From Phaeosaccion multiseriatum (Eukaryota > Protista > Ochrophyta, other classes): a stretch of 64,000 bases of DNA. Under the pieces are notes generated by a model. It made no database searches, was not told the DNA's origin, and was given only the letters and a program-made list of their open reading frames with translations. Of the stretch, positions 3,968-63,213 are shown piece by piece. Position numbers and translations under genes: made by a program. Numbering within the stretch: the first letter of the stretch is position 1; each line of letters opens with the position of its first letter. The stretch is taken from assembly GCA_965112735.1 (NCBI GenBank), contig OZ218952.1:2294001-2358000 (forward strand), written 5' to 3'.

Positions 3968-4012
<45 letters not shown>

Positions 4013-4088
4013 TCCACTCGCCTAGATGGATGCCCAGCCACTCATTTAGATCTAGCCAAGTACCGCTGCTCTCGCTCGTCTAGCCTAG

Positions 4089-6113: not shown

Positions 6114-6160
<47 letters not shown>

Positions 6161-7671: not shown

Positions 7672-12024
<4,353 letters not shown>

Positions 12025-17053: not shown

Positions 17054-17086
<33 letters not shown>

Positions 17087-17928: not shown

Positions 17929-17972
<44 letters not shown>

Positions 17973-18659
17973 GAAAGGGATGAACAGCGAAGAGAGGCAC
18001 AAGACGTAACTCAGCCCCCCTCCTAAGAATGAAACTGACTACACTGCAACTCCTCCAAAAACACCCCGCAAGGTAGAAATGATCGCACATTGTGTCGTTG
18101 GAGACTTGCACACCCCCTACCTCCCCTACTCACCCACTCAAAAACACCCCACAACAACCCACCCAGTCACTCACTCACTCTCTCATCCCCTCTCCCTCCC
18201 TCTCCCTCCCTCTCCCTCCCTCCCTCGCTCCCTCGCTCCCTCTCTCTCTCTCTCCCTCCACTCTCTCCCTCTCTTCCCTCCCTCCCTCACCATGATCATT
18301 TGGTCCCACATCTCTACGCTGTACACGGTCGGCTCTGGCTCCACGAGCCTCCTCTGTAGCTCCCAAAACGTCTTGTAAAGAGAGTAATCAATCGAAACCC
18401 CGCCTCCTCCACTGCCCCCCTGCCCCTCCCCCCCTTCCCCGCTGTCAATGTTCATCCTGGTGGCCGCTGCGTGCTCTCCTATGGGGTCATCCAGCAGTAC
18501 TCCTCCTCCACCGAAGCCCATGGCGCCTCCCACGAACTGCTCTTCTCCCTCGAAGGTCGTCACGTTGTCGACGTTGTACTTTGCGTTGGCATTCAGACCA
18601 CTCCTTTCGCTGGGGGGGGGGGGGAGAATGTGACGATGATGATGATGATGATGATGATG

Positions 18660-18699
<40 letters not shown>

Positions 18700-21287: not shown

Positions 21288-22389
21288 ATGGCGAGAGTCA
21301 AGCAGCAGTCTAAGAAAGGCAAAGGCATAGTAGGAGGCCCAGATCGGAGCGGTGGAGGCAGCAGCAGGGGCCGGCCTGGGGCCGACAAGAGCCCGAAGCC
21401 CAAGTGAGTGCGAAATCTTTCTGTGCGTGGGTTGACAGTGTGCTTTGTAACGTCACCCAGAAGCGCCAAAGACCATTTTGCTTCACCACTTTTGTGCATA
21501 TCCTGACGGATGCTTCATGTTACCAGAGGCGTGTGTTGCAATGGGGATGCTGCCGTCAAATGGGGGTTCTTCCTGTCCTCCAGGAGGGCTCTGGCTCTAA
21601 GTAAAACCAGGGATGAGGGATTAAGAAAATGGAGAGGCCCACTATAGTGCTCTGTGACCGACATGGCCCGATATTTTCGTCGCCTCACCCCTCTCACTCG
21701 TCCCCTCAACCAACCCTTGCCGCTATTCGCTCGTCCAGGGCGGCCAGGCAGCAGCAGCAGCAGCCTCAGGTGCACCGACGGAGACGTCCTGGGGAGGCAG
21801 CTCTCAAGGAGATTAGAAGGTATCAGCGTGGGACGGAGCTTTTAATACGCAGGCTTCCTTTCGCCAGGCTGGTGAGTGGCAGAGCACTGGGGAGGAGGAG
21901 CCGCTGGCTCTCCCTTCTGAGGATGATTCGTTTAGCCACCTCTGCTCGCCTCATCCTTCCCTCTCTCTCTCTCTCTCCCTCCCCCACTCTCCCCATCACG
22001 CACCCTCACCAGTTCCCCACTCACCCCATCCCTCACGCACGCATTCACCCTCCTGTACCCCCCCATCCCTCCCTCTCAGTTACTCACGCACTCCCTCCCT
22101 CACTCCCTCCCACCTCTCATGCACCACCTCTCCCCTCCCACGCACCCCACGCCACCCCTCCCTCTTCCTTCTGCAGGTGAAGGAAATATGCCAAGACATG
22201 TGGACAGAGACTGGGCCCGCGTACCGCTTTCAGGCGAGTGCAATTTTGGCTATGCAGGAGGCAGCAGAGGCGCATTTGGTCGGCTTGTTCGAGGATGCGA
22301 ACATTGCGGCCATCCATGCCAAGCGGGTCACCATGCAAGTGAAGGACATACAGCTAGCACGCAGGATCAGAGGCCAGGCGAGGGAGTGA
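21288..22389 (+). CDS. CENH3: Centromeric histone H3 variant (exons 21288-21403, 21739-21871, 22177-22389)
   Basis: MARVKQ start with a divergent tail, then histone fold [30 protein letters not shown]|[19 protein letters not shown]...IHAKRVT...[14 protein letters not shown]3 hallmarks: loop 1 four residues longer than H3, H3-Q68 replaced by A, H3-T107 replaced by A. Confidence 0.88.
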
Positions 22390-23924: not shown

Positions 23925-24807
23925 TTACGAAGCTGAGGGTACGTCGGGCGCGTCTGCCCCAGCAAAGTAGCCTCTGACCACCTTAAAGCCGTTCGGCGCC
24001 TGCTCCAGTGGCTCCAATTGGAAGAGTGCAGAGTCCCCAACCTGTTTCGACATAAAGTACGTGCAGCTCCGGCCCTCACTGGGCTCATAGGGAGGCAGAA
24101 CGAAGTCGAGCACACACGCTCCGTTTGGGCCTGCCGTAAGCTCATGCAGGTTTCCCTTGTTGGGGAACAGCACATTGGTGGAAGGGGCGGTGCAGCATTC
24201 TTCGCAAAGTAAGGCCCTCCCACGTTGGCCCTCCCACGCCCGTTCAGGTTGCTTTTCTGGCGTCCAGTCAAAGCTCTTTATCACGAGTGAGCCGCTCACC
24301 AATCGCGATACGACGCTCATGTGTGGGTGGTCATGGAGCGGAATGCTCACTCCAGGCGGAAGAACAAAGATACCAAAACAGTAAGAGGGGGTCTCCGCGA
24401 TGTGCACATAGCGGACGTTTTGGGCAGAGCTGGGCAGTACCGTGAGGTGGGCGCTGTCACTCGGCACCCCGAGGTTCTCTGCTGTCATCTCTTCGACGGC
24501 GGACCGGAGACGGGTCACCTGTAGCGTACAAGCAACAGAGAGGCGCGGTGTAGGCGGCGAAAATCAGTGACGAGGGAAGCTCGAGTCTAAATGGGAAGGG
24601 GAAAAATATACCTGTCCTATAGCTCTATCACTCCCGTATGCTCCTTTGCCACTTCCTTCTAGTCTTTTTTTTTCTCACCTCCTCCTCCAAAGGCAGGTTT
24701 TGATTGGCTAGGTCTTCCAGCACATCCACGAGCTCCCTAGTGGCCGGTGTACTATGTACTCTATCAATGCATGGCGGATCAACTCGCGACTCCATGAAGT
24801 TTCCCAT
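23925..24807 (-). CDS. Plant cysteine oxidase / cysteamine dioxygenase (PCO_ADO family; exons 24807-24679, 24518-23925)
   Basis: YVHIAETPSYCFGIFVLPPGVSIPLHDHPHMSVVSRLVSGSL (HxH iron ligands), NLHELTA (third His), LDFVLPPY and RSCTYF. Phase-0 intron with a 129-nt first exon. Confidence 0.9.
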
Positions 24808-26759: not shown

Positions 26760-29700
26760 TTACATCCTCCTCCTCCTTCTCCTCGTCGTCGTCGTCGCAT
26801 CAGCAGCAGCAGCAGGCGAGTCCTCGGCGCCCTCCGCTGCAGTAGAAACGTCCTCCGCCTCATCCTCTGCATCAGCAGCTGTACCAGCATCATCATCATC
26901 ATCATCATCATCACAATCAGATACCTCCGCAGGCTCCTGCTCAGGCTCGACAGGCTCCGCCTCTCCCTCTGCGGAAGGTCCACCTCCTGCCATCTCTTGC
27001 TCCAAACCAGAAGTGCCCTTCTCTTCAATCCCTACTTGCTCTCCCTGCTGTTCCTCCACCCCAGCGGCTGCCTCTGCCTCAGCAATGCTGTCCCCCTTGT
27101 CGCGCTTCTTCTTGCTCTTGGTCTTCTCTTTCTTACTCTCCTTGCCCTTGCCCTTGCCCTTGCCCTTGTCCTTGCCCTTGCCAGCCTTCTCCTGTTGGCC
27201 CTCCTCCCCCCCGCCTGCCAGGAAGGTCTTGTACTTTTCAACAATGTATTCAAACCTCCTGCGGTCAACCTTCAGCCCTGACTCCTTCATGTCCTTAATC
27301 TGCCGTGTGGTGTGGTGTGGTGTGGTGTTGTGAGTGTTGCAGTTGGTAAGGACGAAGAAAAGGAGGGGAGGGGGAGGGAGGGACAGCGGCCGAAGGCATG
27401 AGATGGTTTAAAGCGAATGCACTAGGGACAGTATATATATACGAAGTGAAGGATCTCCTTGTAAGTAGCTAATGAACTTGGGATATGAACACGAAACAAA
27501 CAAACGCCCCCACTTTCCCTCGTCAGAGACGCCTAGGCGCTCGTTTGAGAGAGGCCGGAATATAGAGCGTGAAGGAGGATGGAATATCGAGCACCGAGGA
27601 GGAATATCGAGCCTCGAGGCGGACGGAGGGGAGTCGAGTTCCTCTACACTTACCAGCAGCAGGCCCTGTCGGTAGTCGTGAGCCACCCCACAGGCGTCGA
27701 TAGCCACGTGATAAGTGACTCCGTCGGGCTTGAGACCGAGTTGCTTCATCTCCTCGAGGAGCCTAAGGGTGGCCGGTACGTCTCCGTTCTTGGCGAAGGA
27801 AGCGATGGCGCTAGTGTATGTAATCTCGTTGGGGGTGAGGCCCTTTATTTCGTTTGGTGCAAGGGGATGGTGCACAAAGTCCGGAGGAGGAGGAAGAGGA
27901 GGGGGTGGGGGTGGATGGAATGGGTATGAGTGGGTATGAGTGGGGGCAAGCAAGCAAGCACGGACAAGCCGGGGGGCGGGGTTGCGTATAGAGAGAATCA
28001 GAGGTCCGTCCTCATCACCCTCCCTCCCTGCCTCTCTCTCTCTCTCGCGCCCCCTCCTTCCCTCCCCTCCCTCAGCTCCCGCCCCCCTTGTCCCTCCAGC
28101 TTCCCCCTCACCCACCCTCCCTCCTCCCCCGTTGCTACATACTTGGGCCTCACCTCCATTCTCATTTCCTCCAACAGCCACTGCGCGTCACCGGAGCTTC
28201 CCGCCTTTGCAGCAGCGGAGATGGCGTAGTTGTACACCATGACGTCAGGCTTCAGACCCTCCCCGCGCAGCTGTGCGTTCAGTGTACACCAACCAACAGA
28301 CCGACCAAAGGACCATAAAGAAGGGCAAAAGTGGACAGCACCATAAAGAAGGGCCAAAGTGGACAGCGCAGAGCAGAGGAGAGCGTCGGGAGGACACATA
28401 CAGGAGGACGTGAGGAGGACGTGAGGAGGACGTGAGGCAAGCTGGAGGGAACGGGGGAGGGGAGGAGATAGGATGGGAGTGAAGGAGATGTCTGTTTGCA
28501 AGAGCCTCAGGTATGTGTTGGCACCCGTCCATCCATCCGCTTGGGGGCACGGCTCAGCTCAGCTCAGCTGGGCTGGCGAACAACCAACACGCCTACACAT
28601 GTACCTGCTTGAGCATCTTGATGGCCCTGGCCACATTGGCCTCGTCCCCCCCCTGGCACAGGGCGGCGATGAGACCGCTGTACGTCTTAATGTCCGGCAC
28701 AAGCTCCGCCGCTCGGAGCTCCTTCACCAACGCGTACACCTGCCCCGTGCGTGTGCGTGTGGACGTGGGCGTGTGGCGCGTGGGGTGAAGTAGGATGGGG
28801 TGGGATGGGGTGGGATGGGGTGGGATGGGGTGGGGGGAGGGGCACGGCAGAAAGAGAGACGAAATGACGAGATTCGAAGTCAGCTTCGCTTGGGGCAACG
28901 TACAAGCGCTGTTGAGGGGGTGGATCGGTGGTTTCGGTCAAAACGCCGGGCGGCATCGTTTCGATCACTACCCACCCCCCCTCCCCGTTACACATCTCCT
29001 CATCCCTGAGGCAGCGCCAAAGGGCTGGCAACCGAGCACCCCTCCCCCCTCCCCAAATCCACTCTACCACCCTACCTTGCCGGTCTTGCCAGCCCGCGCA
29101 CAAGCGTCAATGCACGCGTTGTAGAGGGGCAGGGTCTGCAGACCTTTCTCCACGGCCTCCTTGAAGATCATGATGGCCTTGTCGGCACGCTTGGCGTTGC
29201 CTGCAGCCTTGATGGCCTGTGTGTAGCTCATCTCATCAGCCTCGAGATTCAGCGTCTTGAGGGTGTCTGCCAACTCGTTGGCCTTTGCGGGGCGGTCGGC
29301 GTTGTTGCACGCGGCCATGGCAGCGGTATATGTGACCACACTCGGCTCCATCCCTCGCTGCTGCATCTCGTTCATCAGAGACAGAGCGGCATCTGCCTCC
29401 CCCGCCCTACTGCATGCGTTGATGGCGGTGTTGTAGGACCAGTCATTGGGGGTAAAGCCTCGCTCCGCCATGTCTCGAAGGAGTCGAATCGCCGCCGTGT
29501 GGTTGGCAACATTGGCCGCCGCATCGATGGCCGAGTTGTACACCACATCGTTGAGGGGCACCCCTTCCTCTCGCATGAGCTTCATGTAGCCAAGTGCGGC
29601 CTTTAGGTCTCCGGCCTTGCCCACCGCGCTAATGGCAATGGCGTACGTCTTTTGCCCCGGCTTGATGCCCGCCTCCTTCATCTCCTCCATCAGTCTCTTG

Positions 29701-30773
29701 GCCTCCTCCAGTAGTCCCCCCTTCTGACACGCCCCCAAGGCGGCGCCATAGCAAATTTCATCCGGGGGCACGCCATCGGCTTTCATCTTTTCCAGCACCT
29801 TGAGAGCTTCTTCCGGTCGGTTCACCTTGGTGCAGCCGTGGATGCACGTCGTATACACCACCACGTCGGCTGGGAACCCCTTCTTGTTCATAGTGTCGAT
29901 CATCTCGATGGCGTCTAGCCACCGTCCGGCCCGAGACAAGCTCGACACGGCCGTGTTGTAGATGATGGCGTTGAGCTCAAAAGCCGCTCCATTGAGCGTG
30001 TTGATGATTGTCTTCCATTGGCCTCGGTCCCCCAATTCCTTCAGATGGGACACCAGCTCCTTTTGCTCCTTTATGACCCACGGGTCCGCGTCAGGGTCGA
30101 ACGCCCTCCTGCCCCGGCCTCCCCCCTGTCCCCGCCCCCGACCTCTGCCCGAGAATCTTCCTCCCCTTCCGGGCCCGCCTTCTCCGCCCCCTTCCTCTCC
30201 ACCCATGAAGCCCGCAAAGTACTTTCCTCCGTATCCTCGTCCACTGGCATGGTTCCGCACTCGTTTTGCTCTTCTCTCGTCCCGAGCGCTTCGGGGCTTG
30301 GCACTCTGACTGCCATTAGCACCCGCTCGCGCAAACCTCTCCTTCCTCTCTCGCTGCCTCTGCGAGTACGAGCTGGCGGCGGGCACTTGTGCGTCTGACC
30401 ATCTTCCTTGGGCCGGTGGCTGCTGCTGCCGCTCTTGTCCCTCGCTCTGCTCCAGCGCCTGGCCCCACTCCCCCCCATCTTGGTGGCCCTGGTCACCATC
30501 TACTGCAGCAGCGTCGAGCATCTGAGGGTCCTGTTCGCCCCACTGAGCCATAGCCACATGAATGCTCCTCCTACTGCCTGCGGATAGCGTCCATTGTCTT
30601 CTCCGCCCACTTTCACTGTGGCCACTCGCCCGTGCCTTCTCCGGAAGGGCCCCACCAAGTGCTGCTGCTCCTGCTGCTGCTGCTGCTGCGGTCCCGAATC
30701 TCAAGGACGGTGTCACCGCAAAGGCTGCGGTCGAGCCTCCGGCGGCCTGGCGCCCCATTGTGAGGTGTCCCAT
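26760..30773 (-). CDS. P-class pentatricopeptide repeat protein, probably organellar (at least 5 exons)
   Basis: More than 12 tandem 35-aa repeats (e.g. IIYNTAVSSLSRAGRWLDAIEMIDTMNKKGFPAD, VVTYTAAMAAC, ITYTSAIASFAKNG) over exons near 29073-30773, 28603-28738, 28141-28270, 27651-27843 and 26760-27300. STAA-FAV suggests a plastid presequence; an upstream exon may be missing. Confidence 0.92.
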
Positions 30774-32432: not shown

Positions 32433-35400
32433 ATGGGCGATTACTCTCCTTACGATGAGTGGGGGCACCCGAAGCATGGGCAGTTCTTCAACGCTTATCC
32501 CAATCCAGGACAGCAGCAGCAGCAGCAGCAGCAGCATCAGAACCAGTACAACTATGGAGGAGGCGGAGGAGGGGGAGTGGGGGGGGGAGGAGGCGGAGGA
32601 GGACGCGGCGGCTTCGGGGGGGGCGACTTTAGCGCGGGCAGGGATGACTTTTGGGGTGCTGGAGACCGAGGAGGAGGAGGAGGAGGAGGAGGAGGAGGAG
32701 GAGGAGGAGGAGGAGGACGGGGGGGGGGGGGGGGCGAAGGAGGGTTTTCGGGGGGGAGCAATGGCAACGGTGGAGGGGGGCGAGGGCCCTTTCCGCATCA
32801 AGGGCAACTCTACGGCGGCGGCTGGGGCATGCAACAGGATGGCGGGGAGAGATTTCACCAACAACAGCAGGGTCGTGGAGGGGGCGAGGAAGGGCAAAGA
32901 CAGGGTGGCTGGGGAAGTAACGAAACCCACCAAGGAGGGCACAAGTACTCACAACGCGATGAGGTCGGGGTCACGAGAGATCGAGGGCGAGGGAGGGAGG
33001 AAGAAGGGGTTGGTGAGGGCTTGCGCGCAGGAGGGCGGTCGTCGAGGTCTCCTCGGCCCAACAATCACATTGCGCAGTCTTCGGACGCCGCATTCGCCTA
33101 CCGGGACGGGAGGGACGGGAGAGGCTTTGGCGGCGGCGGCTTTCCCCCTGAAGCCTCGGCAGGTCCCGCAGGGCTTCCGCAGCATCCATTCTTCGCAAAC
33201 CAAGCCCAAGCAGTATCCCAGCCTTTGTACGAGCGCGGCCCGCCGCGCTTTGTCGAGGACAGCTTTCCTCCTCGAAGCCATCACTCCTTTTCCTCGCAGG
33301 GGCCGGGGCAAGGTCAGGGGCAGCAGCAGCAGCAGCAGGAGAAGCGCAGCGTGGAGCGGCACGGATCTGCTTCTTGGCATGCCTCGCCCACACCACAGCA
33401 CGTGCCGCAGTCGCGACAGACACAGCAGCGACAGCCGCCACGTAGTCGAGACGGGGGCCCGCAGGAAAGGAGGGGGGCGCGTGGGGGGGGGGGTGCGGCC
33501 GGGCACTACGGTCCTCGCAGTGGTAGCAACGGGGCGGGCGACGGCAGCTCTAGGGGGGTGGGGGGCGCGGGTGAGAGAGGAGGAGGAGGAGCAGGCAGGG
33601 GCGCATGGAGGAAAGACGCGAGAGTGGTCGTGGGAAGGAGAGACGGGAAGGGGGAAGGGCGGCGGGCGCCTGGAAGCACGAGGGAGCTGTGGCCTGTGAA
33701 GAAGAAGAAGAACTTCTCGTGCGAGGACAAGAGGCCCGTGGTGGCGTTACACGAGTATTGCCAGCGCTTCCTTAAGGATAAACCAGAATACAGCTTTACG
33801 GAAGTCGAGCAGACCGAGCAGCAGGTAGAAGGAGGAGCAGGAGGAGCAGGAGGTGGGGGAAGAGGAGCTGAAGCAGCGTCTGAGGCGGATACTGGGGCTG
33901 GGGAAGACGCAGCGCCTTCTGGAGACGAGCCAAAGCCACACACGAAGGGGGCTGAGCACTGGTCAGGGAAAGGAGCAGGAGCAAGCACAGGAGGCGCCCC
34001 TGAAGCAGGGGCGGAGGGGGCGAACCAGCATGATGAGCCAGACGCAGGGGACACCCCAAAAGCCAAGGCGAAGCCTGTCAGCTCAAGCGGAAAGACGTGA
34101 GTACCGGAACGAATGAATGAGTCGTCTTTGAAGCGGTTCGTGAGGAAAAGGGAGAGAATGAAAACACCGTTCTACATCCACCACAAGTCGCCGCGTTGGT
34201 GGTGGTGGTGGTGGTGGTGGGCAGGAAAGGCAAAAGGCAAGGGAAGGACAGGAATGTATTTTGGCACGTGTGTCTGTATCTCCTCTTCCGTCCATCCCTC
34301 CCACTTCTCACCCCCACCACCCTTGCCCCTCCCCTCCCCTCCTCTCCTCGCCCACCTCGCCCCTTCGCCCCTCCTCTCCTCGCCTCCTCTCCTGGGGGCG
34401 TGTGCGGCTCATCAGCTTCTCTTGTATGGTCAAGGTGGGCAGGAAGACGTTCGGGCCAGGCATGGGCAGGCGCCACAAGGTGAGGCACCGGAAAATGCTC
34501 TGCACTGCCAAGCTGTGCTAAGCTTAGCTGTCGCGTACAAGGCTTTGCTATTGCTAAGCTGTGGTGGGCAAGGCTCTGCTAGTGGCTAAGCTGTGGTGTA
34601 CAAGGCTTTACCATTGCTAAGCTGTGGTGTACAAGGCTCTGCTCTTGGCTAAGCTGTGGTGTACCAGGCTCTGCTAATGGCTAAGCTGTGGTGTACACGG
34701 CTTTGCTATTGCTAAGCTGTGGTGTACAAGGCTCTGCTAATGGCTAAGCTGTGGCGTACAAGGCTTTGCTAATGGCTAAGCCGTGGCGTACAGGCTTTGC
34801 TAATGGCTAAGCTGTGGTGTACAAGGCTTTGCTAATGGCTAAGCTGTGGCGTACACGGCTCTGCTAATGGCTAAGCTGTGGTGCGGGTCACAGGCTTTGA
34901 ACGCGGCCCCTTTCTCTTCCTCCCGCCCAAAGGCTCGGTGGGGCGGTTGTGTCTTCTCTGCTAAGCAAGCGGGACCCCTCGTCGCACGTGTTGCCCCTTA
35001 CGCAGTCACTCACGCAACCACTCACACCCCGCCCCCTCCCACCTCCCCTCCTTCTCTCCCTTCCTTCCCCCCCCTTCCCTCTCAGGAAGCGGAGAACAAT
35101 GCTGCCCTGTGCGCTCTCCGATCGATCCTCCCGGACTTCTACGATCTCTCCAAGCTCACGGCCTACGAAAGCAGTGGTTCCAAGAACGCTTCCAAGAAGG
35201 AGCTTAATCAGCCGCCAAAGAAGGGTGCTAAGGAGGGGAAGGGGGCAGCAGAAGTTCGAGGAGAGGACGGAGAAGAAGACGATGCCATGGACGTTGGAGG
35301 AGGAGGTACAGGGCGTGGAAACGGAGAGAGGAGAGGCCCACGGGGGCGGAGGAAGGGAAGTGGGGGGGAGGAGGATGGTGGGGGGAGCGATGAAGACGAA

Positions 35401-38400
35401 GTCGACTACGAAGCCGAAGAGGAGGGAGAGGAGGGGCAGGGAGGAGAACGAGCAAGGCAGCAGCAGAGACGCCCGAATAGTGCTGGTACTGCTACTGCTA
35501 CTGCATGTGCTGCTTCTGCGGCTGGAGGAAAGCCCAACCCTTGCCATCTGCTTCACCAAGTGTGCCACGCCGCAGCGGCCATTTCGCAATCCGCCTCATA
35601 CGCAGCCCACCCGCAGGAGCAGGAGAAGGGGAGCGACGGACAAGGGCAAGGACTAGGGCGAGCAGGAGGGGGGGGGGGTGGTGGTGGCAGTCGAGGGGCC
35701 TATCGCAGTCAGGGGAGCGGCCCTGCCCCGCAGATGTACGTGGGGACTGTGACAGTGGTGCTTCAGAAGGGGGGCGCTGCAGTTGGCGACGACGGGACTG
35801 GTGTGCACGTACCTCAGGGGGGAGAGGAGGAGGCGCTCGTCGTGCATGCGCTGGGGGCATCCAAGAAGGAGGCACGCGCCAATGCAGCCCTCAAGGTGAG
35901 GCAAGGCAGGAGGGAGGCCGGCAGCAAGTCTTGGCTCCCACCACTTCTGCTTGCTACTGCTACTGTTTCCTCTGCTGCTTCTGCTGCTCCTGCTCCTGCT
36001 CCTGCTCCCGCGCCTGCTACTATACTACTGTTGCTGCTACCACAGCTGCTGACCATACTCTTCGTCTGTCCTGATCTCACCCCCTCCCATTGCATTGCCC
36101 GTGAACTACCAACTACCGCGCCGCGCATCCATCGCGCATGCATGCATTACATCGCACCCCCAACAGATGTTGGCCCGCTTACTCCCTCGTTCCGATGGGC
36201 CCAGGGAAGGGGACGGCACTCACCAAGGAGAGGTGGAAGCCACCGAGTACTACAGAGGAAGAGTGGCGGAGGTGGTGGAGGCGGCCGTGCAGCGCAAGGC
36301 GAGGGAAGCCAAGGCGATTCAAGAGGCGCGGGAGAGGCGGAGGGAAGAAGGGGAAGCGCGAAGGGCCCAACGGGTGGCGGCGCAGCAGGAGCTGGCGGCT
36401 AGGAGGAAGAGAGCGGCGTTGAACAGTCCAAGTGCAGGCGGCGATGGTGATGGTGGTGGTGGTGCGGATGGAGCGGAGGGAGAAAAGTCCAAGAAGGCGA
36501 GGGTGGGGAGCGCTGCCGGGTCATCAGACGGAGAAGGAGGAGGATGTGGAGGGGATGGGGACGGTGGCGGCGTCGAGAGGATGGAGGATCTGCCTACCGC
36601 GGAGGAGCTGGAAAGGCAGGAAAGTGTCCGTGTTGGTGTGGGGAAGGAGAAGGAGGTGGTGGTGGAGGAGGAGGAGGACGGGGGAGGGGGTGAGGAGGAG
36701 GAGGAGGAGGAGGAGGAGGAGGAGGACGGGGGAGGGGGTGAGGAGGAGGAGGAGGGGGGGGAGGAGGAAGAGAGGGGGGAGGAGGGGGAGGAAGGAGGGG
36801 AGAAGATGGTGTAAGGAAGGGGGATAGGAGGAGACGGAAGGGCAGGGGGAGGAGGAGGAGGAGGAGGAGGAGGAGAAGGAGGAAGGTCCGGAGTGGGCTT
36901 GAATAATTGAAGGATAGGGGTGGTACGAAGGTGTGTAGGGGAGAGAGCGAAGCGTCATGTGAACACGTGGTACTTAAACGCATGCGGGTTTGCAAGTCTT
37001 CTTTCGTATGGGGGATGGGGTGACTGCAGATAGATGGGAGGGTTGGTAGCAGAAGGTGTAGGGCGGGGTGTACGGAGCAAAAGAGTTTTGCGTGTGCTTC
37101 TCGCTGGACCAGTCAAGCAGGTTAGGCAGGACAGAGATGCTGTGTGTACGATACAGCGACCGCCCAAGCGATAAAAGCACAGAGAGATTCGTTCCTTGTA
37201 CCACCTGTGCCCTCTCCACATGGCCGGACCACACCTTTCCTTTCGCACCCAAAGGCGATCAAAGGCGTTGTCGGACATGTGGCGATGGCCCTGGGATCGG
37301 TCGTGGGCCGTGCTCTCTCTCTCTCTCTCTCTCTCTCTACCTCTCTCTCTGCTGTCTGCTGCTGTGCGGCAGAGAGGCAGAGAGGTAGGGAAGAGGTGGA
37401 TGGGTGTGCCTGGCTCGCCGTTCGCCCCCTCCTCCCCCTTGCGCTGTCGCTGTTGATGTCCAGTGTGCCTAGTGAGCGGTGCTGTGCAGGGCAGAGTAGG
37501 TGGTGGCGTGCCCCTTGCCCGTGTGTACAGCGCTCAGAACACGCTGCCTCTTCGCGGCTCTCCTCGACTCACACAGATGACACACAGGCGGCACGTCCAA
37601 TGCAAGCAAGCAAACGACTTTGTGCCGGCAAGTGCCATCTGTGTGAGATGAGGGTCATGCATATATGCCGGAGAAGCCTGGTGCCAGGTCGCGTAAGACC
37701 CTTGGAGGCAACCTTTGAGGCCTTGCTGCACCAGACTTCTCCCGGACGATGGCAAGCCTGCCTCACTTCACACACCATGGCATGGAAACGGCTCTTTCTG
37801 CCACACACGCCCCTGATAGAGAGATGGCCACTGACTGGTTATTGAGCCCACACCCCACCCTTTGCAAGTTCCATCCATCTTTTCTTCCAACTGGTCTTTG
37901 TTTTTCACCCCCCTCCCCCAACACGCACACGCTCTCTATCTCCTCTCCCTCTGCCTCTCTCTTCTTTTCTCTCTCTCCCTCCCGACCCCCCTGTCTCTCC
38001 TCCCCTTTCTCTCTGTCTCTCTCCCTCCCCATTAACAACAACAACAACAACGACGACAACAACAACAACAGGCTACGCACGTGCGCCAAGCCCAAGCCTC
38101 TCTCCGAGAGATCATGCCCGACATTGGCCTCGCCTCCGTACTCGCCATGCACGGCGGCAAGGTACAGGTTGGGGTCGAGGCCACCCAACAAGAGGAAGAG
38201 GAGGAGGAGGAGAAGGAGGAGGAGGAGGGGCAGCTCATAGGGGCAGGAGGAGGAATCCAAGCAGCAGCCCAACGAGCCCGGAGGAGGCAGCGCCAGCAGC
38301 AGGAGCAGCAGGGGGGAAGGGAGGAGGAAGTGGAGGCGGCCCGGGCAGCGACGCTTTATTCCGACTTGCTCTATCGACTCTGTCGGATCGATTCGCGCAT

Positions 38401-41400
38401 CTCCGTCCCACGGGGACACTCCTTCTCCGTGTCGAAGGAGGGGAGGGTGGTGTCTGCTCTCAAGATTGTCGTCAAGACTGGAAGGCAGGGCACCAGCATG
38501 GATGATAACCTTCGGGTGAGTGGCTGGGTGAATGGGCGCCCAGGGTGGGTGGGTGGGTGGATGAGTGGGTGGATGAGTGGATGGATGAGTGGGTGGGTCC
38601 GTCAGTCAGTCAGCCAGTCAGTGCGAAAGCAAGGAAGTGACAAGATGCTTTTAGGGGCGGGGGGTGGGCGGCAAAGTAGTGAAACGGTGATGCACTGATT
38701 AGGAGGTTTGACGCGCACCTAACCACTCCATGGTACTGCCTGACGAGGATTACCGGCCCCCGGCCACTCTCCTGCTTCTTTCTTCTCCCTTCCTGTACTC
38801 AATCCTTCTTTCCCCTTGTCCTGGGCAGGAGGGCGATGTGCTGGTGATGCACAAGGGCTCCGGCGACACAAAGACCGAGGCCAAGAACGCCGTATCCCTC
38901 AAGGTAAGTCACTCAAGCAAGGAAACAGAGCAGGGCTGCTGTAGACCAGTGTCACAGTCTCTGCCCTCTGCCGTCCGTCACGATGGACCAGGAGATCGCG
39001 CTCCCAATACGTAGGATGGGGCCGCGGGATTTGTTTTCCCTCTCCTCTCTTCGATCAATCCCTTTTCTATCACTTGTCTGCTTCTCTCTTCTGTCGGTCT
39101 TCTCTTGTGTGTGTCTCTCCGTCTGTGCGTCTGTGTGTGGCCACGGGTCTCCTCCGTCCCGTCCCATCCCGTCCAACTCTTCCCTTCCCTTTGTGTGCGT
39201 GTGTATGTATGTGTATGTGCGTGTGTGTGCGTGTGTGTGCGTGTGCGTGTGCGTGTGCGTGTGTATGTGTGTGTATGTGTGTGTGTGTGCATATGTGGCG
39301 GGGGCAGGCTCTACGCTTCCTCCTCAACTCGAGCAAGTCGTCCCTCATCCCTGCCACCCTCGACGCGCTAGAGGCGCAAAAGAAGAGCGCGCTACTGGGC
39401 ATGGACACGTGCGCGGGTGGTGATGATGGTGGCATAGCTAAGGGCAAGGAGGGGGAAGAGGAGGAGAAGGGTGCGAACAGTGGTTCTGGGGCTTCTGCAG
39501 CTGGCGACGCTTCTGCGTACAGCGTGCGTCGTGAGGAGTGGCGCTGGCCTTTGGGCGGTGAGTTGGCGGCTGCAGCAGCCAAGATTTATCGGTCTGCGAG
39601 GGTGGGAAAGGAGCAAGAGCAACAGCTGGTGATCCAGCAGCAGCAACAGCAAGGACAAGGGGCGGCAGGAGAAGGGTCGATGGACGTTGGCGAGGATGGG
39701 CAGGGGCAAGGGCCCTCTGTCCGGGAGGCAGGAGGAGCAATGCCGATGGACACTGAGATTGGGAGCAGCAGCAGCAGCAGTGGCGGCTGTGACGGTGGTG
39801 CAGCAGCGGTACCGGACACTCTGAATCAGACCCACTGCTACTTCCTTCATAAGCTCTGTCTCCTCGACCCGCGCATTCTTAGTAATGCAGGTGGGTTGGT
39901 CGGGGGAGGGGGGTGGATGATGGAGGTCGGGCAGTGAGCGAGGAGGAAGAAGAAGAAGAAGAGGAGGAGGAGGTGGAGGAGGAGGAGGAGGGGGGGGGGG
40001 GAGGGGAGGAGGAGGAGGAGGAGGAGGAGGCAGAAGAAGGCAATCTGTGTGTGATGTGCTGTCCTGTGGTGGTGGAGCGTGCCTCTGCTGACCTTGTTCG
40101 GAGAGTGCTGTACTACAGTATACTATCTCTCTCACACGCCTTTGCCCTGCCCTGCCCTGCCCTGCCCTGCCCTGCGGCCTTGTGTTGTGTTCTCCTCCCT
40201 CCTCTCTCACATCTGCTTCGCCTGTCGATGTGCCACACTCACTCACACACACATGCGCACACACGGACACACATGCGCACACACACGACAGTGTACTCTA
40301 AGATCGCAGATCCGTCGGCTCCGGGAGAGCCGTCGCGCATGGCGGTCAGCGTTCGACTCATCCATAACCAGGTACCGTGTGAGTCTTGAGAGAGAGGTCA
40401 GGATACAATCTAGGGAGGTGTGTGTGGGTGTCTTGTATGTGGCTTTAGTTGAGAGAGAGAGATCAGGTGCGCGCCAACGCGGCACATACAAAAGCAAGCA
40501 ACAGTGAACCTCTCTATCTCTTTCTCCTCGCTGCCACGAAGAGAGCCTGGTCTTTTTTCTCTTTCCTCTTTCTATTCGATACATATTCGAGGTGCTGCTA
40601 CCGCTCGGCCACAGCTGACATTTCACGTGTTAGATTGGTCCTTTTAGCTGTACGTGCTTGTCTGTGTTGACATTTTGTGCCTGTTTGATCACTGTTTGTT
40701 GGCTGCTGTTTCGATGGCAGCAGGTGGCTGAGAACGAGGTGGTGATGCAGAGAGGCTTGGTGACGGAGGAGGAGGTGGAGCTCTTTGAGGAGGGTGAGGC
40801 CAAGAACAAGAGGGAGGCGAGGAATGCAGCCGCTCTCAAGGTACGGGTGAGGGGAGGGGAGGGGAGGGAGAAAGGGGGGTAAGGGGTTGAAGTGCACTGG
40901 GTCGATATACTTGCGTGTAGCTTCCTTCCTTTCGTCCTCCCGATTGTCTCACTCTCTCTCTCTCTCTTCACTCTCTCTCTCTGCTCTCCCTCTTTCTCCT
41001 TCCTTTCGGTAGATGCTCCAAATCCTGCTGGGCGTAACGGACGATGCTGCTTTGGAAGCGGCCATCGCAAAGCTTGAGCACGCCAAGGCCAAGGAAGACA
41101 AGAAGAGTAAAGCAAAGAGGGCAGCTAGAGCGGCGGCGGCAGCGGCAGCGGCAGCGGTTGGCAAGGAGGGGGGGGCGGACCGAGGGGACAATGGCATCCG
41201 AGTCGGGGGGGAGACGATGATTCAACTCGATAAGATGAATGATAAAGTGTTTGGCGGGCAGGGCGGAGCGGAGGAGACTCTGGAGGAGATTGCCGAACGA
41301 CAACGACTGCGGCAACAGGAGCAGGAACAGGAGGAGAAGAAGAAGAAGGGGGGGGCGCAGCAGCTGGTGGTGGTACAGCAGCAGGGGGGCGGTCAAGAGG

Positions 41401-42123
41401 AGGAGGAGGAGGAGGAGGGGGAGGAGGAGGAGGAGGGGAAACAGGCCGAGGAGAAGAGCAAGCGAAGTGGTGATGGTGGTGGCGCCAGCGGGGGCGACCG
41501 AAGCCTGGTTGAGTCCATGAATATTCTGCAATCCACCATGGAGGAGCAAGACAGACAGGACGCAGCCGCCGCCGCTGGTGGTGGGGCAGCAGCAGCAGCA
41601 GTAGTAGGAGCAGCAGGAGCAGCAGGAGCAGCAGGAGCCGCAGTTGGTGATACAGCAGCAGCACCGGCACCAGCACCAGCAGCAGGGGAAGAGGGTCGCA
41701 GCGTCTCCTTGGAGGAGACGGCGCGACTTGAGGCCCAGGAGGAGGAGGAGAAGGCGTGCATGCTGCTCATGTGCACCTTCCTCCACCGGCTCTGCTGCGC
41801 CGACACGCGAGTGCTCAAGTCCCCGTGCTACACCATCTCTATCCTCGAGGAATGCATTCGGGCGGAGGTGCGAGTGGAGTTGCAGAGGAAGGCCCTCCCG
41901 GCAGCAGCAGCAGCAGCAGCAGCAGCAACGGCGGCGGCGCCGAGCGGTAGCACTACCACTAGTAGTAGTAGTAGTGGTGGTGGTGGTATTGGTGGTGGTA
42001 ATGGTAGTGGTGGTAGTAGTAGTGGTGGTGGTGGTGGTGGTGGTGGTGGTGGTGGTGGTGGTGGTGGTGGTGGTGGTGGTGGTGGTGGTACGGGTGCAGA
42101 GCTGGGGGCGGGGCCGAGTGGGG

Positions 42124-42156
<33 letters not shown>

Positions 42157-42509
42157 GCAGTGTCGGCAGTGTCGGCAGTAGTGTCCAATTACCAGGGGAG
42201 GCCTTCTTCCTTCAAAAGGTGGGCGAGGGGAGCACAAAGAAAGAGGCCAAGGCACTAGCGGCTTTCAAGGTAAATGAAGGGGTGTGGGAGAGGGAGTGAA
42301 GTGGGAAGTGGTGTGTGGCGTGCTGCTCGCGTTATGGCCCTTCTGTCTCCTCTCTTTCTCCCCACCCCCACCCTCCTCATTGTCTCACATACACACAAAC
42401 TCAAATACACGCACCCCTTCCCCTCCCCGTCGCTTACCCCACCACCCACCTCTCCCATTCCCCCCAACGCGCGCACGCACACGCACGCGCACACGCACAC
42501 GCACGCACG

Positions 42510-42550
<41 letters not shown>

Positions 42551-43144
42551 CTGCTCCGCGTCCTGCTGCCCGACGCCGTCACCCCACGCGACATTTCCCT
42601 TGCCGTGGACCGCAAGGAGGAAGCCTACACCTCGTTGAAGCTTGTGGCGGCACGCACGATGGACTCGCTCCTGGCGGCGCGGGGAGGTGAGCTCAAGGGA
42701 CCGCTGCTGCTTAACGCGGAGCTCGTGCACACCTTCCATAAGGAGAAGGAGAAAGTCGGGCAGGGGGCGGGCAAGGAGAAGGAGGTAGCCGCGGCAGCGG
42801 TAGCAGCGGTGGCGGCGGTAGATGGTGCTGCTGCTGGTGGCGGTGTCGGAGGGGCTGCTGCTGCGGATGATGGAGCAGCGGGTGCAGGAGGAGGAGGAGA
42901 AGGCGGGGCGAGTGGACAGGGTGGTGATATACAGGGCACAGGTGGCACACCCCTCCTTCGCTTCAAGGGCAAGCTTCCGGAAGAGCTCACCGTGGTGGAG
43001 CTGAGAGAGGTGCTCGGAGAGTTTGGGTTGAACACGTTTGGCATGAGGAAGGGGCTCTTGCAGCGCTTGAAGGCCCACGCAGAGAGCCAGGCCTTCCTCG
43101 CTGCGGGCGGGGCAGCAGCAGCAGCAGCGGCGGGAGTCCGGTGA
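32433..43144 (+). CDS. Multi-dsRBD RNA-binding protein: Gly/Gln-rich N-terminus, five dsRBD-like domains (first one DGCR8/Pasha-like), C-terminal SAP domain
   Basis: Exons 32433-34096, 34416-34479, 35086-35895, 36167-~36808, 38072-38515, 38829-38903, 39308-39890, 40292-40371, 40724-40840, 41013-42269, 42551-43144. dsRBD C-helices: [71 protein letters not shown]: [29 protein letters not shown]. The 36.8-38.07 kb junction is uncertain, so this could be two tandem genes. Confidence 0.8.
34508..34885. repeat. Intronic minisatellite, about 32-bp unit, about 11 copies
   Basis: Head-to-tail GCTAAGCTGTGGTGTACAAGGCT(C/T)TGCTAATG variants with no unique spacers. Confidence 0.9.
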
Positions 43145-43840: not shown

Positions 43841-46800
43841 TCACGGCACTTCCCTTGCTGCCCTTTGTAGTACTCGGGTCGAGTGTTGACAGCCCCTGCG
43901 ATAGAGCGAGGGAGGGAGGGAGGGAGGGAGGGAGGGAGGAGGAAGGGAGGGAGGGAAAAGGCAAGTGTCGGTAAGTAACAGCAAAACGAGAGAGAGCACA
44001 GACTTTGAGGTGCTGACCACGCCCTGACTTGAATTGTCACTTGGCGACACTCCACAGCAGGGCGATGCTGTGGTGCGGCGATCGTTCAGTGGTGTCGCTC
44101 GGTGGTCTCCCAGACCCAGCCACGCCACTCACTCTTCGCACTCACGCACTCACGCACTCACCTGACCCTGGAGCAGGCAGGACTGTGTCTCTCTCGTGCT
44201 CTCGGCGTTCTGCTTTCCTGCTCCAGGGACAAGCTTGTCGAGGAACTCCGCCTTCGGAACGGTAGAGCGACCTACAAGCAGAATGCATGCACGCACGCAC
44301 GCACACATAAATAATCACTCGCTTGTTCACTCACGCAGTCACCCACGCACTCACGTACTGACTGACTGACTGACTGACTGACTGACTGACTGACTGACTG
44401 ACTGAGTGACTGACTGACTGACTGACTGACTGACTGACTGACTGACTGACTGACTGACTGACTGACTGAGTGAGTGACTGAGTGAGTGAGTGAGTGACTG
44501 AGTGAGTGACTGACTGACTGACTGACTGACTGACTGACTGACTGACTGACTGACTGACTGACTGATTGACTGACTGACTGACTGACTGACTGACTGACTG
44601 ACTGACTGACTGACTGACTGACTGACTGACTGACTGACTGACTGACTGACTGACTGACTGACTGACTGACTGACTGACTGACTGACTGACTGACTGACTG
44701 ACTGACTGACTGACTGACTGACTGACTGACTGACTGACTGACTGACTGACTGACTGACTGACTGACTGACTGACTGACTGACTGACTGACTGACTGACTG
44801 ACTGACTGACTGACTGACTGACTGACTGACTGACTGACTGACTGACTGACTGACTGACTGACTGACTGACTGACTGACTGACTGACTGACTGACTGACTG
44901 ACTGACTGACTGACTGACTGACTGACTGACTGACTGACTGACTGACTGACTGACTGACTGACTGACTGACTGACTGACTGACTGACTGACTGACTGACTG
45001 ACTGACTGACTGACTGACTGACTGACTGACTGACTGACTGACTGACTGACTGACTGACTGACTGACTGACTGACTGACTGACTGACTGACTGACTGACTG
45101 ACTGACTGACTGACTGACTGACTGACTGACTGACTGACTGACTGACTGACTGACTGACTGACTGACTGACTGACTGACTGACTGACTGACTGACTGACTG
45201 ACTGACTGACTGACTGACTGACTGACTGACTGACTGACTGACTGACTGACTGACTGACTGACTGACTGACTGACTGACTGACTGACTGACTGACTGACTG
45301 ACTGACTGACTGACTGACTGACTGACTGACTGACTGACTGACTGACTGACTGACTGACTGACTGACTGACTGACTGACTGACTGACTGACTGACTGACTG
45401 ACTGACTGACTGACTGACTGACTGACTGACTGACTGACTGACTGACTGACTGACTGACTGACTGACTGACTGACTGACTGACTGACTGACTGACTGACTG
45501 ACTGACTGACTGACTGACTGACTGACTGACTGACTGACTGACTGACTGACTGACTGACTGACTGACTGACTGACTGACTGACTGACTGACTGACTGACTG
45601 ACTGACTGACTGACTGACTGACTGACTGACTGACTGACTGACTGACTGACTGACTGACTGACTGACTGACTGACTGGACTGACTGACTGACTGACTGACT
45701 GACTGACTGACTGACTGACTGACTGACTGACTGACTGACTGACTGACTGACTGACTGACTGACTGACTGACTGACTGACTGACTGACTGACTGACTGACT
45801 GACTGACTGACTGACTGACTGACTGACTGACTGACTGACTGACTGACTGACTGACTGACTGACTGACTGACTGACTGACTGACTGACTGACTGACTGACT
45901 GACTGACTGACTGACTGACTGACTGACTGACTGACTGACTGACTGACTGACTGACTGACTGACTGACTGACTGGCTGACCTTTGCAGAGCTTCTCGAAGT
46001 CCGCCTTGATGCTCTGCAGAGCCTGCATGTCCAGCCTGCCTTGCTTCATCAACTGAAGCGATCGAGCAAAGTAATAAAGCAAACGAGCCAGTCAGTGGTA
46101 CCACAAGAGGGACGTGGTTAGTCAGAAGAATGAGGGTGTCGGACCCAAAGGCGGGCGTCAAAGAGCTACCCACTAAAGAGTCACTCACTGCTCTCCGAGG
46201 ATGAGGCAGTGATGGAGCCGTCGAAAGCAAGCAAGCATAGCAAGGAATCCACCCACCCCTATACTCGTAACTCTCCACACAACATGCCTGTCCACCCCTT
46301 CCTCCTTCCTCCTTCTCTTGCCTTCCTCCAACTCCTCACCATGAGGCACAAGAACTCTTCCTGGTCGATCTCGGCGTCCTTGTTGCCCAAGCAGTCCAGC
46401 ACCTGCAGGTCCGCTCGCGTCAGCTTCTCCTCCAGCTTGGAGGTCAGCTTGGCCTCCTGTGGCGACGATTGAGCACACACATCCGAACGGCCATCAGCAG
46501 CAGCAGAAGAAGCGTATGTGAGCAAAGCAGTCCATATGAACTGCGGAGGTTAGTACTCCGGTCGGCCAGCGCCTCTGCCCCTCTGTCCGGTCCTGCGCAC
46601 GTGTCGCTCACCTGGTAGCGGTCAACGATGACGCTTGCCACGCGACCAAGAGCCATGGCGAAGATTGGGATACTTTGGTACGCGAAGGAAGGAAAGAAGG
46701 AAGAAGGAAGGAAATGAGGAATGGAGTAAGGAAGGAAGGAAGGTAGGCAGGAAGGAAGGAAGGAAGGAAGGAAGGAAGGAAGAAAGGAAGGAGGGAAGGA

Positions 46801-49800
46801 AGGAAAAAAGGAAGGAAGAAGAAAGGAAGGAGGGAAGGAAGGAAGGAAGGAAGTACGAAGGAAGGAAGGAAGGAAAGAAGGAAGAAGGAAGGAAATGAGG
46901 AATAGGCAGGAAGGAAGGAAGGAAGGAAGGAAGGAAGGAAGAAAGGAAGGAGGGAAGGAAGGAAAAAAGGAAGGAAGAAGAAAGGAAGGAGGGAAGGAAG
47001 GAAGGAAGGAAGTACGAAGGAAGGAAGGAAGGAAGAAAGGAAGGAAGAAAGGAAGGAAGGAAGGAAGAAAGGAAGGAAGGAAGAAAGGAAGGAAGGAAGG
47101 AAGGAAGGAAGGAAGGAAGGAAGGAAGGAAGGAAGGAAGAAAGGAAGGAGGGAAGGAAGGAAGAAAGGAAGGAAGAAGAAAGGAAGGGGGGAAGGAAGGA
47201 AGGAAGCGAAGGAAGGAAGGAAGGAAGAAAGGAAGGAAGAAAGGAAGGAAGGAAGGAAGAAAGGAAGGAAGGAAGAAAGGAAGGAAGGAAGGAGGGAAGG
47301 AAGGAAGGAAGGAAGGAAGGAAGGAAGGAAGGAAGGAAGGAAGGAAGGAAGGAAGGAAGGAAGGAAGGAAGGAAGGAAGGAAGGAAGGAAGGAAGGAAGG
47401 AAGGAAGGAAGGAAGGAAGGAAGGAAGAAAGAAGGAATGAAGGAAGGGAGGAAGGAAGGGAGGAAGGAAGGGAGGACGGGTGGAAGGAGAAGGAAGAAAA
47501 GGAAGGAAGGAAGGAAGGAAGGAAGGAAGGAAGGAAGGAAGGAAGGAAGAAGGAAGGAAGGAAGGAAGGAGGGAAGGAAGGAAGGAAGGAAGGAAGGAAG
47601 GAATGAAGGAAGGAAGGGAGGAAGGGAGGAATGGAGGAAGGGAGGAAGGGCGGAAGGAAAGAAGGAAGGAAGAGGAAGGAAGAGGAAGGAAGGAAGGGAG
47701 GAAGGAAGGAAGGAAGGAAGGAAGGAAGGAAGGAAGGAAGGAAGGAAGGAAGGAAGGAAGGAAGGAAGGAAGGAAGGAAGGAAGGAAGGAAGGAAGGAAG
47801 GAAGGAAGGAAGGAAGGAAGGAAGGAAGGAAGGATGGATGGAAGGAAGGAAGGGAGGGAGGAAGGAAGGATGGTAGGATGGAAGGAAGGAAGGAAGGAAG
47901 GAAGGAAGGAAGGAAGGAAGGAAGGAAGGAAGGAAGGAAGGAAGGAAGGAAGGAAGGAAGGAAGGAAGGAAGGAAGGAAGGAAGGAAGGAAGGAAGGAAG
48001 GAAGGAAGGAAGGAAGGAAGGAAGGAAGGATGGATGGAAGGAAGGAAGGGAGGGAGGAAGGAAGGATGGTAGGATGGAAGGAAGGAAGGAAGGAATGATA
48101 TCTTTCTGCCCTAGTGACATCACCCCTTGAGAAGGAAAGACAACCAGCCCAGCCAATCAGCCTTCCCAACTCTCATCCTCGTACCCCTTGAGGGAGAGCG
48201 GCTGGACTCAACGAACTTGTCCTCCCTCTACTCTCTCCACTGCACCACGCAACCACGCTCTTCCTCCCCTCTTCTCTCTCCACACGGCCTCCATTCTCCC
48301 CTACCTGCACACTTTCCTCCCTCCTCTCCCCCCCTTTTCTCTCCTCCTCTACCACTCACCCGGTCAAGATGTATGTCCCTGTGAACCACATGGACAGCGT
48401 GCCCGTCGTCGGAGCGAAGAGCCCCGCCGTGGAGAGAGCGCTGACCGCAAAGTACAAAGACTCGACGAATGTCCACTCCTCGTGGCACATACCGTAAATG
48501 ATGCCTATGACGATCCACAGAGCGAAGAGGCCGAAGGTCACAACATTGTCGGCGTTCTTGAGGTACCAAAATCGAAGCTTCATGAGCACATTTCCTCTCT
48601 CCTGTGTGGGTAGTGGGGGCAATTCGAAGATCGCTCTGTCAAAGAGGTGGGTCTGCACGATTGGAACTATTGTGCTCCATCTGAGCATTATGTGAGAGGA
48701 AGAGATCGTTGTTTGTTCGCGCTCTCTCACTCACTCACTCACTCACTCACTCACTTACACCCTCCCTCACTCACTCACGCACTCACCCACCCACTCACTC
48801 CCTCACTCGCCCATTCACTTACCCACCCATTCACCCATTCACTCACTACTCACTCATTCACTCACTCACCCACTCACTCACTCACTCACTCACTCACTCA
48901 CTCACTCACCCCCTCACTCACTCACCCCCTCACTCACTCACCATACGCTCTAGGAATCGCTCGAACTCCGGGATGGTAAGGGTGCCACTCTTGTCCTCGT
49001 CGGCAAGATCGAACATCTTTCTCATCTTCGATGGCTTCTTCAGGCCCCACTCGTCTTTCTGCATGAAGGCGTATCGTCAGGCAGATATTTGACATGTTCG
49101 GTTTGAACTGCTCAGTGGTTTGGCGCAGTGATCTGTAGCCGGTAGACTCGGGCAGGGGCAACAGCCTTCCGAAGAGGATTCATCACGACTGCTCTCTCCG
49201 TCTCTCTCTCTCCGTCTCACCCTCTGTCTCTCTCTCCGTCTGCCCCTCTGTCTCTCTCTCTGTCTATCTACTATCTCTCTCCGCCTCTCTCTGTGCTTCT
49301 CACCTTTGTGAGTGCATACGCTTGGAATTCCTCGAAGTCAAGCTGCCCGTCCCCGTCACTGTCTGCGCTACCAAAGCTCTCGAGCATCAACTGAGTGCGC
49401 ATGATTCAATTCCATTAGGAGAGAGCAACAGGGGGGTGAGTGACAGTCAGTGACAATGAAGGGAATTGCCCAGAGCCGTACCCACTCCTCAAAAGAGCAC
49501 TACTACAGAAAGAGCGAGGTCGAAGATATTGGTATTTCCAGCTAGAGGCCGAACATGGCGAACAGGGCACCCTTCCAGCACTACCATGAGAGGCGTGAGT
49601 GAGAGTATACCTCTACTCCTCTGCTGCTGACACTCACCTCTTGGTACAGGTCCTGAAGAGGGGAGGTGGGGGCCACAGCCACAGGGAGATGGGTACAACA
49701 AGAAATACAGTGCAGGAGCAGGTTGTCTATCTGTCGGACTGACTGTCCATGCACCTGTCCCGCGGGTGCATCACACGCACGTACACACGCACACACACGC

Positions 49801-63151: not shown

Positions 63152-63213
<62 letters not shown>

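Follow-up and report, generated by a model that had tools for sequence, protein, structure and literature searches.

A large, intron-rich ochrophyte gene is predicted to encode a low-complexity protein with one DGCR8-like double-stranded RNA-binding domain, four degenerate repeats and a C-terminal SAP domain

A stretch of 64,000 nucleotides from Phaeosaccion multiseriatum (assembly GCA_965112735.1, contig OZ218952.1, positions 2,294,001 to 2,358,000 of the forward strand; hereafter the window, with coordinates counted from its first nucleotide) carries a gene on its plus strand at 32433–43144, in which ten exons and nine GT-AG introns yield a single 6,288-nt frame of 2,095 codons (Table 1). 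The reading that we favor, with a probability of roughly 0.5, is that of a single intron-rich ochrophyte gene for a protein of ~2,100 amino acids (aa), more than half of it low-complexity, which would act as a nuclear, RNA-binding cofactor of the double-stranded RNA-binding protein (dsRBP) type, plausibly linked to an RNase III and to double-stranded RNA (dsRNA). The parts of this reading differ in firmness: the anatomy of the protein is secure, its nuclear location and RNA binding are probable judging from its domains, a role as SAP-tethered partner of an RNase III would be a reasonable proposal by analogy with other lineages, and the link to RNase III itself is a minority bet.

The first double-stranded RNA-binding domain (dsRBD1, or unit 1) is split over three exons, with its alpha1-beta1 half at aa ~433–457 (33729–33803). 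An earlier note on this DNA had quoted peptides for this domain, and these are present in the sequence at the positions given; the residues therefore stand as quoted, but the ellipsis between them conceals ~92 low-complexity residues of exon 1 (aa 461–552) that are inserted in the beta1-beta2 loop. This loop was counted as part of exon 1 because the exon-2 acceptor (CATCAG|C) has a single phase-compatible canonical donor, the phase-2 GAC|GTGAGT at 34097, while the GT directly after '...SFTE' is in phase 0 and unusable with that acceptor. The spliced core of unit 1 (85 aa, with aa 461–552 taken out) was used as query and matched the Pfam family dsrm (PF00035) with 48.3 bits (E = 1.5e−12, cut-off 23) over profile positions 4–65 of 66. 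When searched with phmmer against all PDB chains, four DGCR8 sequences came out on top (40–43 bits, E values 3.1e−10 to 4.5e−9), the best of them with 43.4 bits and ~29 identities over 72 aligned positions (~40% for human DGCR8 dsRBD1), while the other structurally known dsRBDs, i.e., those of R2D2, vaccinia E3, bacterial RNase III, PKR, Staufen, DRB3, HYL1, ILF3, and DUS2, reached at most 22.6 bits, ~20 bits below DGCR8 (E values of ~0.008 for Staufen, 0.023 for DRB3, and 0.15–0.34 for the HYL1 chains). The exon-1 half of the domain, searched alone, also placed DGCR8 chains first (E values 0.014–0.034), the next match being R2D2 at 1.3. At the level of pairwise search, the predicted dsRBD1 is thus, as the earlier note had claimed, DGCR8-like, and specifically so rather than just a generic dsRBD.

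Unit 1 and DGCR8 also have in common an I/L-P-D-F ending and a 17-residue motif (L-H-E-Y-x-Q-R-x-L-K-x-x-P-x-Y-x-F). A degenerate DNA pattern of this motif matched three loci in the JGI metagenomes, all three of them animal DGCR8/Pasha; IMG/VR and 596 Gb of prokaryote genomes contained no match. An invertebrate-type Pasha at one of these three loci served as control; it is encoded by an intron-free open reading frame (ORF) with WW, dsRBD1, and dsRBD2 on the AT-rich (32% GC) metagenome contig Ga0247629_10002748 (103–1368, minus strand), and its dsRBD1 matched unit 1 with 31.5 bits, less than human DGCR8 and more than any non-Pasha structure. Vertebrate DGCR8 exons on two further metagenome contigs (L003, 9620–9670, and L004, 82–132, both on the minus strand) end after '...NFFEC' and '...SFFEC', respectively, so that in vertebrate DGCR8, too, the beta1-beta2 loop of dsRBD1 is interrupted by an intron; this intron was not counted as common to the vertebrate and algal genes because the phases appear different (1 vs. 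2).

Such a likeness could mean that the gene is a true, much-expanded orthologue of Pasha/DGCR8, which would place a Microprocessor-like complex, together with an RNase III of the Drosha or Dicer kind, beyond Holozoa; we consider this very improbable. The lead of DGCR8 among PDB chains, the rank of invertebrate Pasha above any non-Pasha dsRBD, and a motif seen elsewhere only in animal DGCR8/Pasha all argue for orthology, although about half of the 17 residues (L-x-E-Y-x-Q … P-x-Y) are generic to many dsRBDs, as in sequences of the HYL1/TRBP type. The remaining features of Pasha were looked for and not found. There was no Pfam match in aa 1–421, the PDB search of this region gave Gly-linker artefacts only, and nothing was obtained with phmmer between the N-terminus and the invertebrate Pasha ORF, so that the absence of a WW/Rhed domain noted earlier was confirmed, whereas the control Pasha does give a weak Pfam WW match (18.4 bits). 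Unit 2 starts ~130 residues after unit 1, leaving no compact dsRBD1-dsRBD2 core, and a DGCR8-type dsRBD2 was not detected either: exon 3 was without any PDB match, the best match of unit 4 was PKR at an E value of 0.13, and the profile of units 2–5 reached only 7% probability against Pasha dsRBD2 in hhalign. In the control Pasha, Pfam dsrm picks up the first dsRBD and misses the second, so weak later units are not disqualifying on their own. The C-terminal exon had no similarity to DGCR8 chains, which is a weak test given that the Drosha-binding tail helix is short and poorly conserved. Pasha and Drosha have been reported from animals and ichthyosporeans only, always together (bioRxiv 10.1101/076190), and Ectocarpus is reported to lack both (PMC4513859, PMC12867755). 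A literature search for DGCR8-like domains in organisms other than Holozoa found no report of one. Since only dsRBD1 is DGCR8-like and no other Pasha feature was found, we regard the protein as a look-alike rather than an algal Pasha, and the caveat of the earlier note that orthology with DGCR8 is unproven stands.

Four further units follow dsRBD1 (aa ~724–852, 1152–1240, 1405–1485, and 1725–1905), every one of which starts with an 'L-L-H-x-x-C'-like helix and ends with G-x-G-x-(S/T)-K-K/T/R-E-A-K/R-x-x-A-A-x-K and then x-L-x-x-L-L. All four units are split by a phase-0 intron directly after the last Lys codon of '...A-A-x-K' (Table 1), and the introns of dsRBD1 are located at other positions; this common position, different from dsRBD1, points to units 2–5 as internal tandem duplicates and to a separate history of unit 1. 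Unit 2 bears a Gly-rich insert and unit 5 a Gly/Ser/Ala insert of ~100 aa. Spliced queries were also prepared for unit 3, unit 4, and the C-terminal halves of units 2 and 5. Among Pfam families, dsrm ranked first for units 2, 4, and 5, with 18.1, 22.6, and 21.3 bits (cut-off 23) at profile positions ~42–66; the E values were 1.6e−4 for the spliced unit 4 (0.034 for the raw exon-8 piece) and 4.1e−4 for the C-terminal half of unit 5. A profile built from the four beta3-alpha2 pieces matched dsRBD proteins in 11 of the 12 PDB chains listed, with PKR first (2.5e−7), vaccinia E3 second (0.0044), and then ADAR2, ILF3, and Loquacious, while hhalign gave the profile of units 2–5 a probability of 85% against Pasha dsRBD1 and 79% against unit 1, over ~27 beta3-alpha2 columns only. 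From these matches units 2–5 are predicted to be dsRBD-derived, having arisen by internal tandem duplication and kept only the K-K-E-A-K helix region. The 'five dsRBDs' of the earlier note are accordingly right in that units 2–5 are true dsRBD-derived repeats and too generous in that only their last ~25 residues are recognizably dsRBD. In canonical dsRBDs, this basic K-K-E-A-K/R helix spans the major groove to contact the phosphate backbone.

The protein ends with a SAP domain and begins with a long disordered-type composition, both already described in the earlier note and both recovered here. An isolated 48-aa piece of exon 10 (42938–43081) scored 24.7 bits against Pfam SAP (PF02037, cut-off 23.9), compared with 20.6 bits inside the longer ORF, and a search of the SAP exon against 1.84 billion proteins returned six matches, all generic SAP-repeat proteins. 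Of the first 420 residues, 30% are Gly and 10% each are Gln and Arg; the stretch also contains 33 aromatic residues and six RGG motifs and is predicted to form an RGG-bearing, FUS-like low-complexity region, followed by a KKKK run at aa 423–426 just before dsRBD1. A simple window-based measure classes 56% of the 2,095-aa protein as low-complexity. An architecture of SAP, RGG, and low-complexity segments would equally suit a generic RNA scaffold of chromatin or the nuclear matrix, comparable to SAF-A/hnRNP U or ILF3/NF90, that plays no part in small-RNA biogenesis and whose DGCR8 likeness is ancestral or convergent, and the presence of only one intact dsRBD in a protein so largely low-complexity, together with the lack of detected orthologues, suggestive of fast lineage-specific evolution, adds to this possibility. 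We hold it to be possible but doubtful, as the K-K-E-A-K/R basic helix is retained in all four degenerate units, which argues for selection on RNA contact, and the specific DGCR8-like signature would be left to be explained.

Several properties of the DNA bear on the gene model. Codon-position GC is high at the first, low at the second, and high at the third position in all ten exons, as in the neighboring tyrosinase and PPR genes, and flat in the introns. GC and AT skew are both positive over 32–44 kb and flip sign at ~32.2 kb, where a 224-codon ORF on the minus strand terminates; the flip and this ORF fit a divergent promoter and one plus-strand transcription unit, and they leave no space for further 5′ exons. 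The gene could still be two adjacent paralogous genes, one made of exons 1–4 (stop at 36812) and the other of exons 5–10 with the SAP domain, given that intron 4 is the longest (1,263 bp), its donor (ATG|GTGTAA) is mediocre, and an in-frame stop at 36812 lies four bases past that donor. This arrangement is nevertheless fairly unlikely: the strand skew is unbroken over 36.8–38.1 kb, exon 5 opens in frame at a good acceptor with no well-placed start codon nearby, the coding periodicity restarts exactly at 38072, and the same type of repeat with the same intron position is found on both sides. No Pfam family matched exon 4. At the exon 7/8 junction, only weak GTCGGG donors (39899 or 39926) are phase-compatible with the phase-0 acceptors at 40718/40721. 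Most of intron 2 is occupied by a 32-bp minisatellite of ~11 copies (86–88% match).

If the gene is indeed a single one encoding a nuclear dsRBP cofactor, A-form duplexes or long hairpins would be bound by dsRBD1 together with the basic helices in units 2–5, the RGG region would contribute non-specific RNA binding and self-association, and the SAP motif and the basic runs would anchor the whole at chromatin. In this way the protein might catch structured nascent transcripts in the nucleus and hand them on, with a Dicer-like RNase III as the most plausible recipient. This cofactor step is modeled on DGCR8, HYL1, DUS16, and RbdB, which act so in other lineages; in animals, plants, and Chlamydomonas, nuclear RNase III enzymes as a rule work with a dsRBP cofactor (PMC12026948, PMC6129010).

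A number of observations weigh against this interpretation. The ~92-aa insert of dsRBD1 falls in the beta1-beta2 loop, a region that normally contacts the minor groove. Units 2–5 are without a recognizable alpha1-beta1-beta2 half, being dsRBD-like at their ends only, unit 3 alone matched nothing in Pfam or PDB, and the single-sequence AlphaFold2 models of units 2 and 5 had a predicted local distance difference test (pLDDT) score of 47, too poor to judge the fold. According to the type A/type B concept of dsRBDs, degenerate units may serve protein contacts (PMC5716075), and units 2–5 may be 'type B' modules of this kind, or they may have lost the ability to fold. The splices across intron 4 and between exons 7 and 8, both read from the sequence, are putative and the weakest points of the gene model. 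No RNase III motif was found in the 64-kb window. Finally, neither a word-indexed search with the N-terminal half of dsRBD1 among proteins of 350–1,116 aa nor a back-translated scan of the JGI metagenomes recovered a relative of the gene, and the proposed function thus gets no support from conservation; as these searches used single exons together with length filters, the absence of orthologues is weakly established.

The likeness to DGCR8/Pasha extends beyond dsRBD1 to a probable nuclear location and the likely presence of more than one dsRBD-type unit, but the algal protein lacks the haem-binding WW/Rhed dimerization domain, the compact dsRBD1-dsRBD2 core, and a recognizable Drosha-binding tail, is ~2.7 times longer, carries four degenerate units and a SAP domain in addition, and belongs to a stramenopile. 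DUS16 reportedly consists of an RRM and one dsRBD (Yamasaki et al. 2016); an RRM was looked for with Pfam in all algal exons and none was found. Identity with DUS16 was rejected, as DUS16 combines a module for single-stranded RNA with its one dsRBD and is without SAP (PMC12026948, PMC6129010); the description in PMC12026948 is of an RNA-binding motif plus a dsRBD. HYL1/DRB1 of plants, DUS16 of Chlamydomonas, and RbdB of Dictyostelium resemble the algal protein in that it, too, is proposed to be a helper of a nuclear RNase III in a lineage with independently evolved microRNAs (PMC12026948, PMC6129010), but none of the three has a SAP domain, and HYL1/DRB proteins have two canonical N-terminal dsRBDs where the algal protein has one canonical dsRBD. 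With Staufen-type proteins it has in common five dsRBD-type units of which only some appear competent for RNA binding, yet it lacks the Staufen C-terminal domain, its match to Staufen is weak (see above), and Staufen is a cytoplasmic protein of mRNA transport without SAP. The algal protein also resembles the SAP-plus-RGG nuclear RNA scaffolds (SAF-A/hnRNP U, SAFB) and the dsRBD-plus-RGG/GQSY proteins (ILF3/NF90, DHX9) in its combination of a SAP motif that tethers to DNA or chromatin, RGG low-complexity regions, and RNA-binding modules, but there SAP is located at the N-terminus, and an RGG, RRM, or helicase serves as the RNA module. No described protein uniting SAP with dsRBDs was found in the literature, and the predicted protein is a new combination of known parts within the well-known class of dsRBPs.

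MicroRNAs arose independently in brown algae and their relatives. Surveys of Ectocarpus found no homologue of Pasha, HYL1/DRB, TRBP, or Loquacious (PMC4513859). The algal protein is a concrete candidate for the dsRNA-binding partner of the Dicer in these algae that would be testable in a culturable relative, and it illustrates that BLAST-level statements of 'no Pasha' can overlook one domain that is split by introns and carries an insert. Should the resemblance be due to common descent, it would inform the time of origin of the RNA-binding module of Microprocessor. A DGCR8-type dsRBD1 might even predate Holozoa or have moved between lineages, with an ochrophyte Pasha-related, SAP-tethered cofactor and a Dicer-like enzyme processing hairpins on chromatin; we rate this scenario as quite unlikely, but under it the 'animal-specific' Microprocessor toolkit would in part be older than animals or of common origin, and the same domain would have been recruited by the microRNA systems that stramenopiles evolved on their own. 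Without common descent, the gene still offers a SAP-plus-dsRBD architecture not described before and illustrates the decay of dsRBD repeats to the basic helix.

Table 1 Exons, unit introns and neighboring features of the dsRBD gene in the 64,000-nucleotide window
Feature	Position	Strand	Content
Exon 1	32433–34096	+	start codon, aa 1–420 low-complexity, KKKK run, dsRBD1 alpha1-beta1, ~92-aa loop
Exon 2	34416–34479	+	dsRBD1 beta2-beta3 (22 letters)
Exon 3	35086–35895	+	dsRBD1 alpha2 (35086–35145, ends ...ILPDF), acidic/Gly linker, most of unit 2 (35527–35895)
Exon 4	36167–36808	+	unit-2 helix end (MLARLLP), charged coiled-coil-like stretch, poly-Glu/Gly tract
Exon 5	38072–38515	+	linker, then N-terminal part of unit 3 (38345–38515)
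Exon 6	38829–38903	+	unit-3 beta3-alpha2 signature (16 letters)
Exon 7	39308–39925	+	unit-3 helix end (ALRFLL), linker, unit-4 N-terminal part (39821–39925); 3′ end uncertain
Exon 8	40721–40840	+	unit-4 beta strands and signature (11 letters)
Exon 9	41013–42269	+	unit-4 helix end (MLQILL), long charged/Ala/Gly linker, unit 5 (41748–42269)
Exon 10	42551–43144	+	unit-5 helix end (LLRVLLPD), ~65-aa non-repetitive segment, Ala/Gly tract, SAP, stop codon 43142–43144
SAP domain	42983–43078	+	C-terminal, in exon 10
Intron at matching place, unit 2	35896–36166	+	phase 0
Intron at matching place, unit 3	38904–39307	+	phase 0
Intron at matching place, unit 4	40841–41012	+	phase 0
Intron at matching place, unit 5	42270–42550	+	phase 0
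Minisatellite	34522–34883		in intron 2
Tyrosinase ORF	4092–6461	−	single exon
THO complex subunit 1 exons	15750–18737	−	Pfam
H3-variant exon	22177–22386	+	C-terminal histone fold
PCO/ADO thiol dioxygenase	23928–24563	−	Pfam
PPR ORF	within 27411–30773	−	
Tetranucleotide array	44357–45979		(ACTG) × ~405, 99% match
Tetranucleotide array	46684–48095		(GAAG) × ~356
Ion-channel pore exon	48359–48730	−	Pfam
Ribosomal protein S10e	56786–57924	−	Pfam
L7Ae-family protein	59366–60028	+	Pfam
Aminotransferase class V and TtcA-type exons	60312–63998	−	
Open segment of 636 codons	61408–63315	−	

The window has ~58% GC and numerous introns and microsatellites, and is eukaryotic DNA. All named database matches of the tyrosinase ORF are ochrophytes, with 53% identity (partial) to the brown alga Choristocarpus, 36% to the pelagophyte Chrysophaeum, and 31–32% to the brown algae Ectocarpus, Pylaiella, and Scytosiphon. 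The PPR ORF has seven PPR_2 repeats followed by more PPR-like exon fragments, and its top named relatives are brown algae, only 27–28% identical. Both neighbors support the stramenopile alga that the earlier note had proposed as host, and, to judge from their modest identities, the database seems to hold no closely related sequenced lineage; a volvocine green alga was rejected as host, since the tyrosinase neighbor matches ochrophytes. The nearest relative of the tyrosinase lies on the metagenome contig Ga0617939_0000041 next to a 2,018-residue ORF (2727–8783, minus strand) with no Pfam match; a tblastn search of the algal gene model against this whole locus, including the 2,018-residue ORF, gave no similarity, and none of the gene neighbors there are in common with the window. 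An Rfam scan of the window gave no match.

Two long tetranucleotide arrays are situated just 3′ of the dsRBD gene, and the second of them is the source of the extreme purine skew at 46–48 kb. The gene for THO complex subunit 1, a component of nuclear messenger ribonucleoproteins, lies ~14 kb upstream of the dsRBD gene, a proximity that is probably coincidental. The histone exon, which matches Pfam Histone with 78 bits, encodes the C-terminal histone fold of a variant H3, and the divergent sequence upstream of it suggests a CenH3/CENP-A-like gene. Exons of a TtcA-type PP-loop ATPase (SGGKDS, C-P-A-C; Pfam ATP_bind_3) are found directly downstream of aminotransferase class V exons, and the 636-codon open segment appears to join the two via a Gly/Glu-rich spacer; together they could form a fused cysteine-desulfurase-like/tRNA-thiolation gene.

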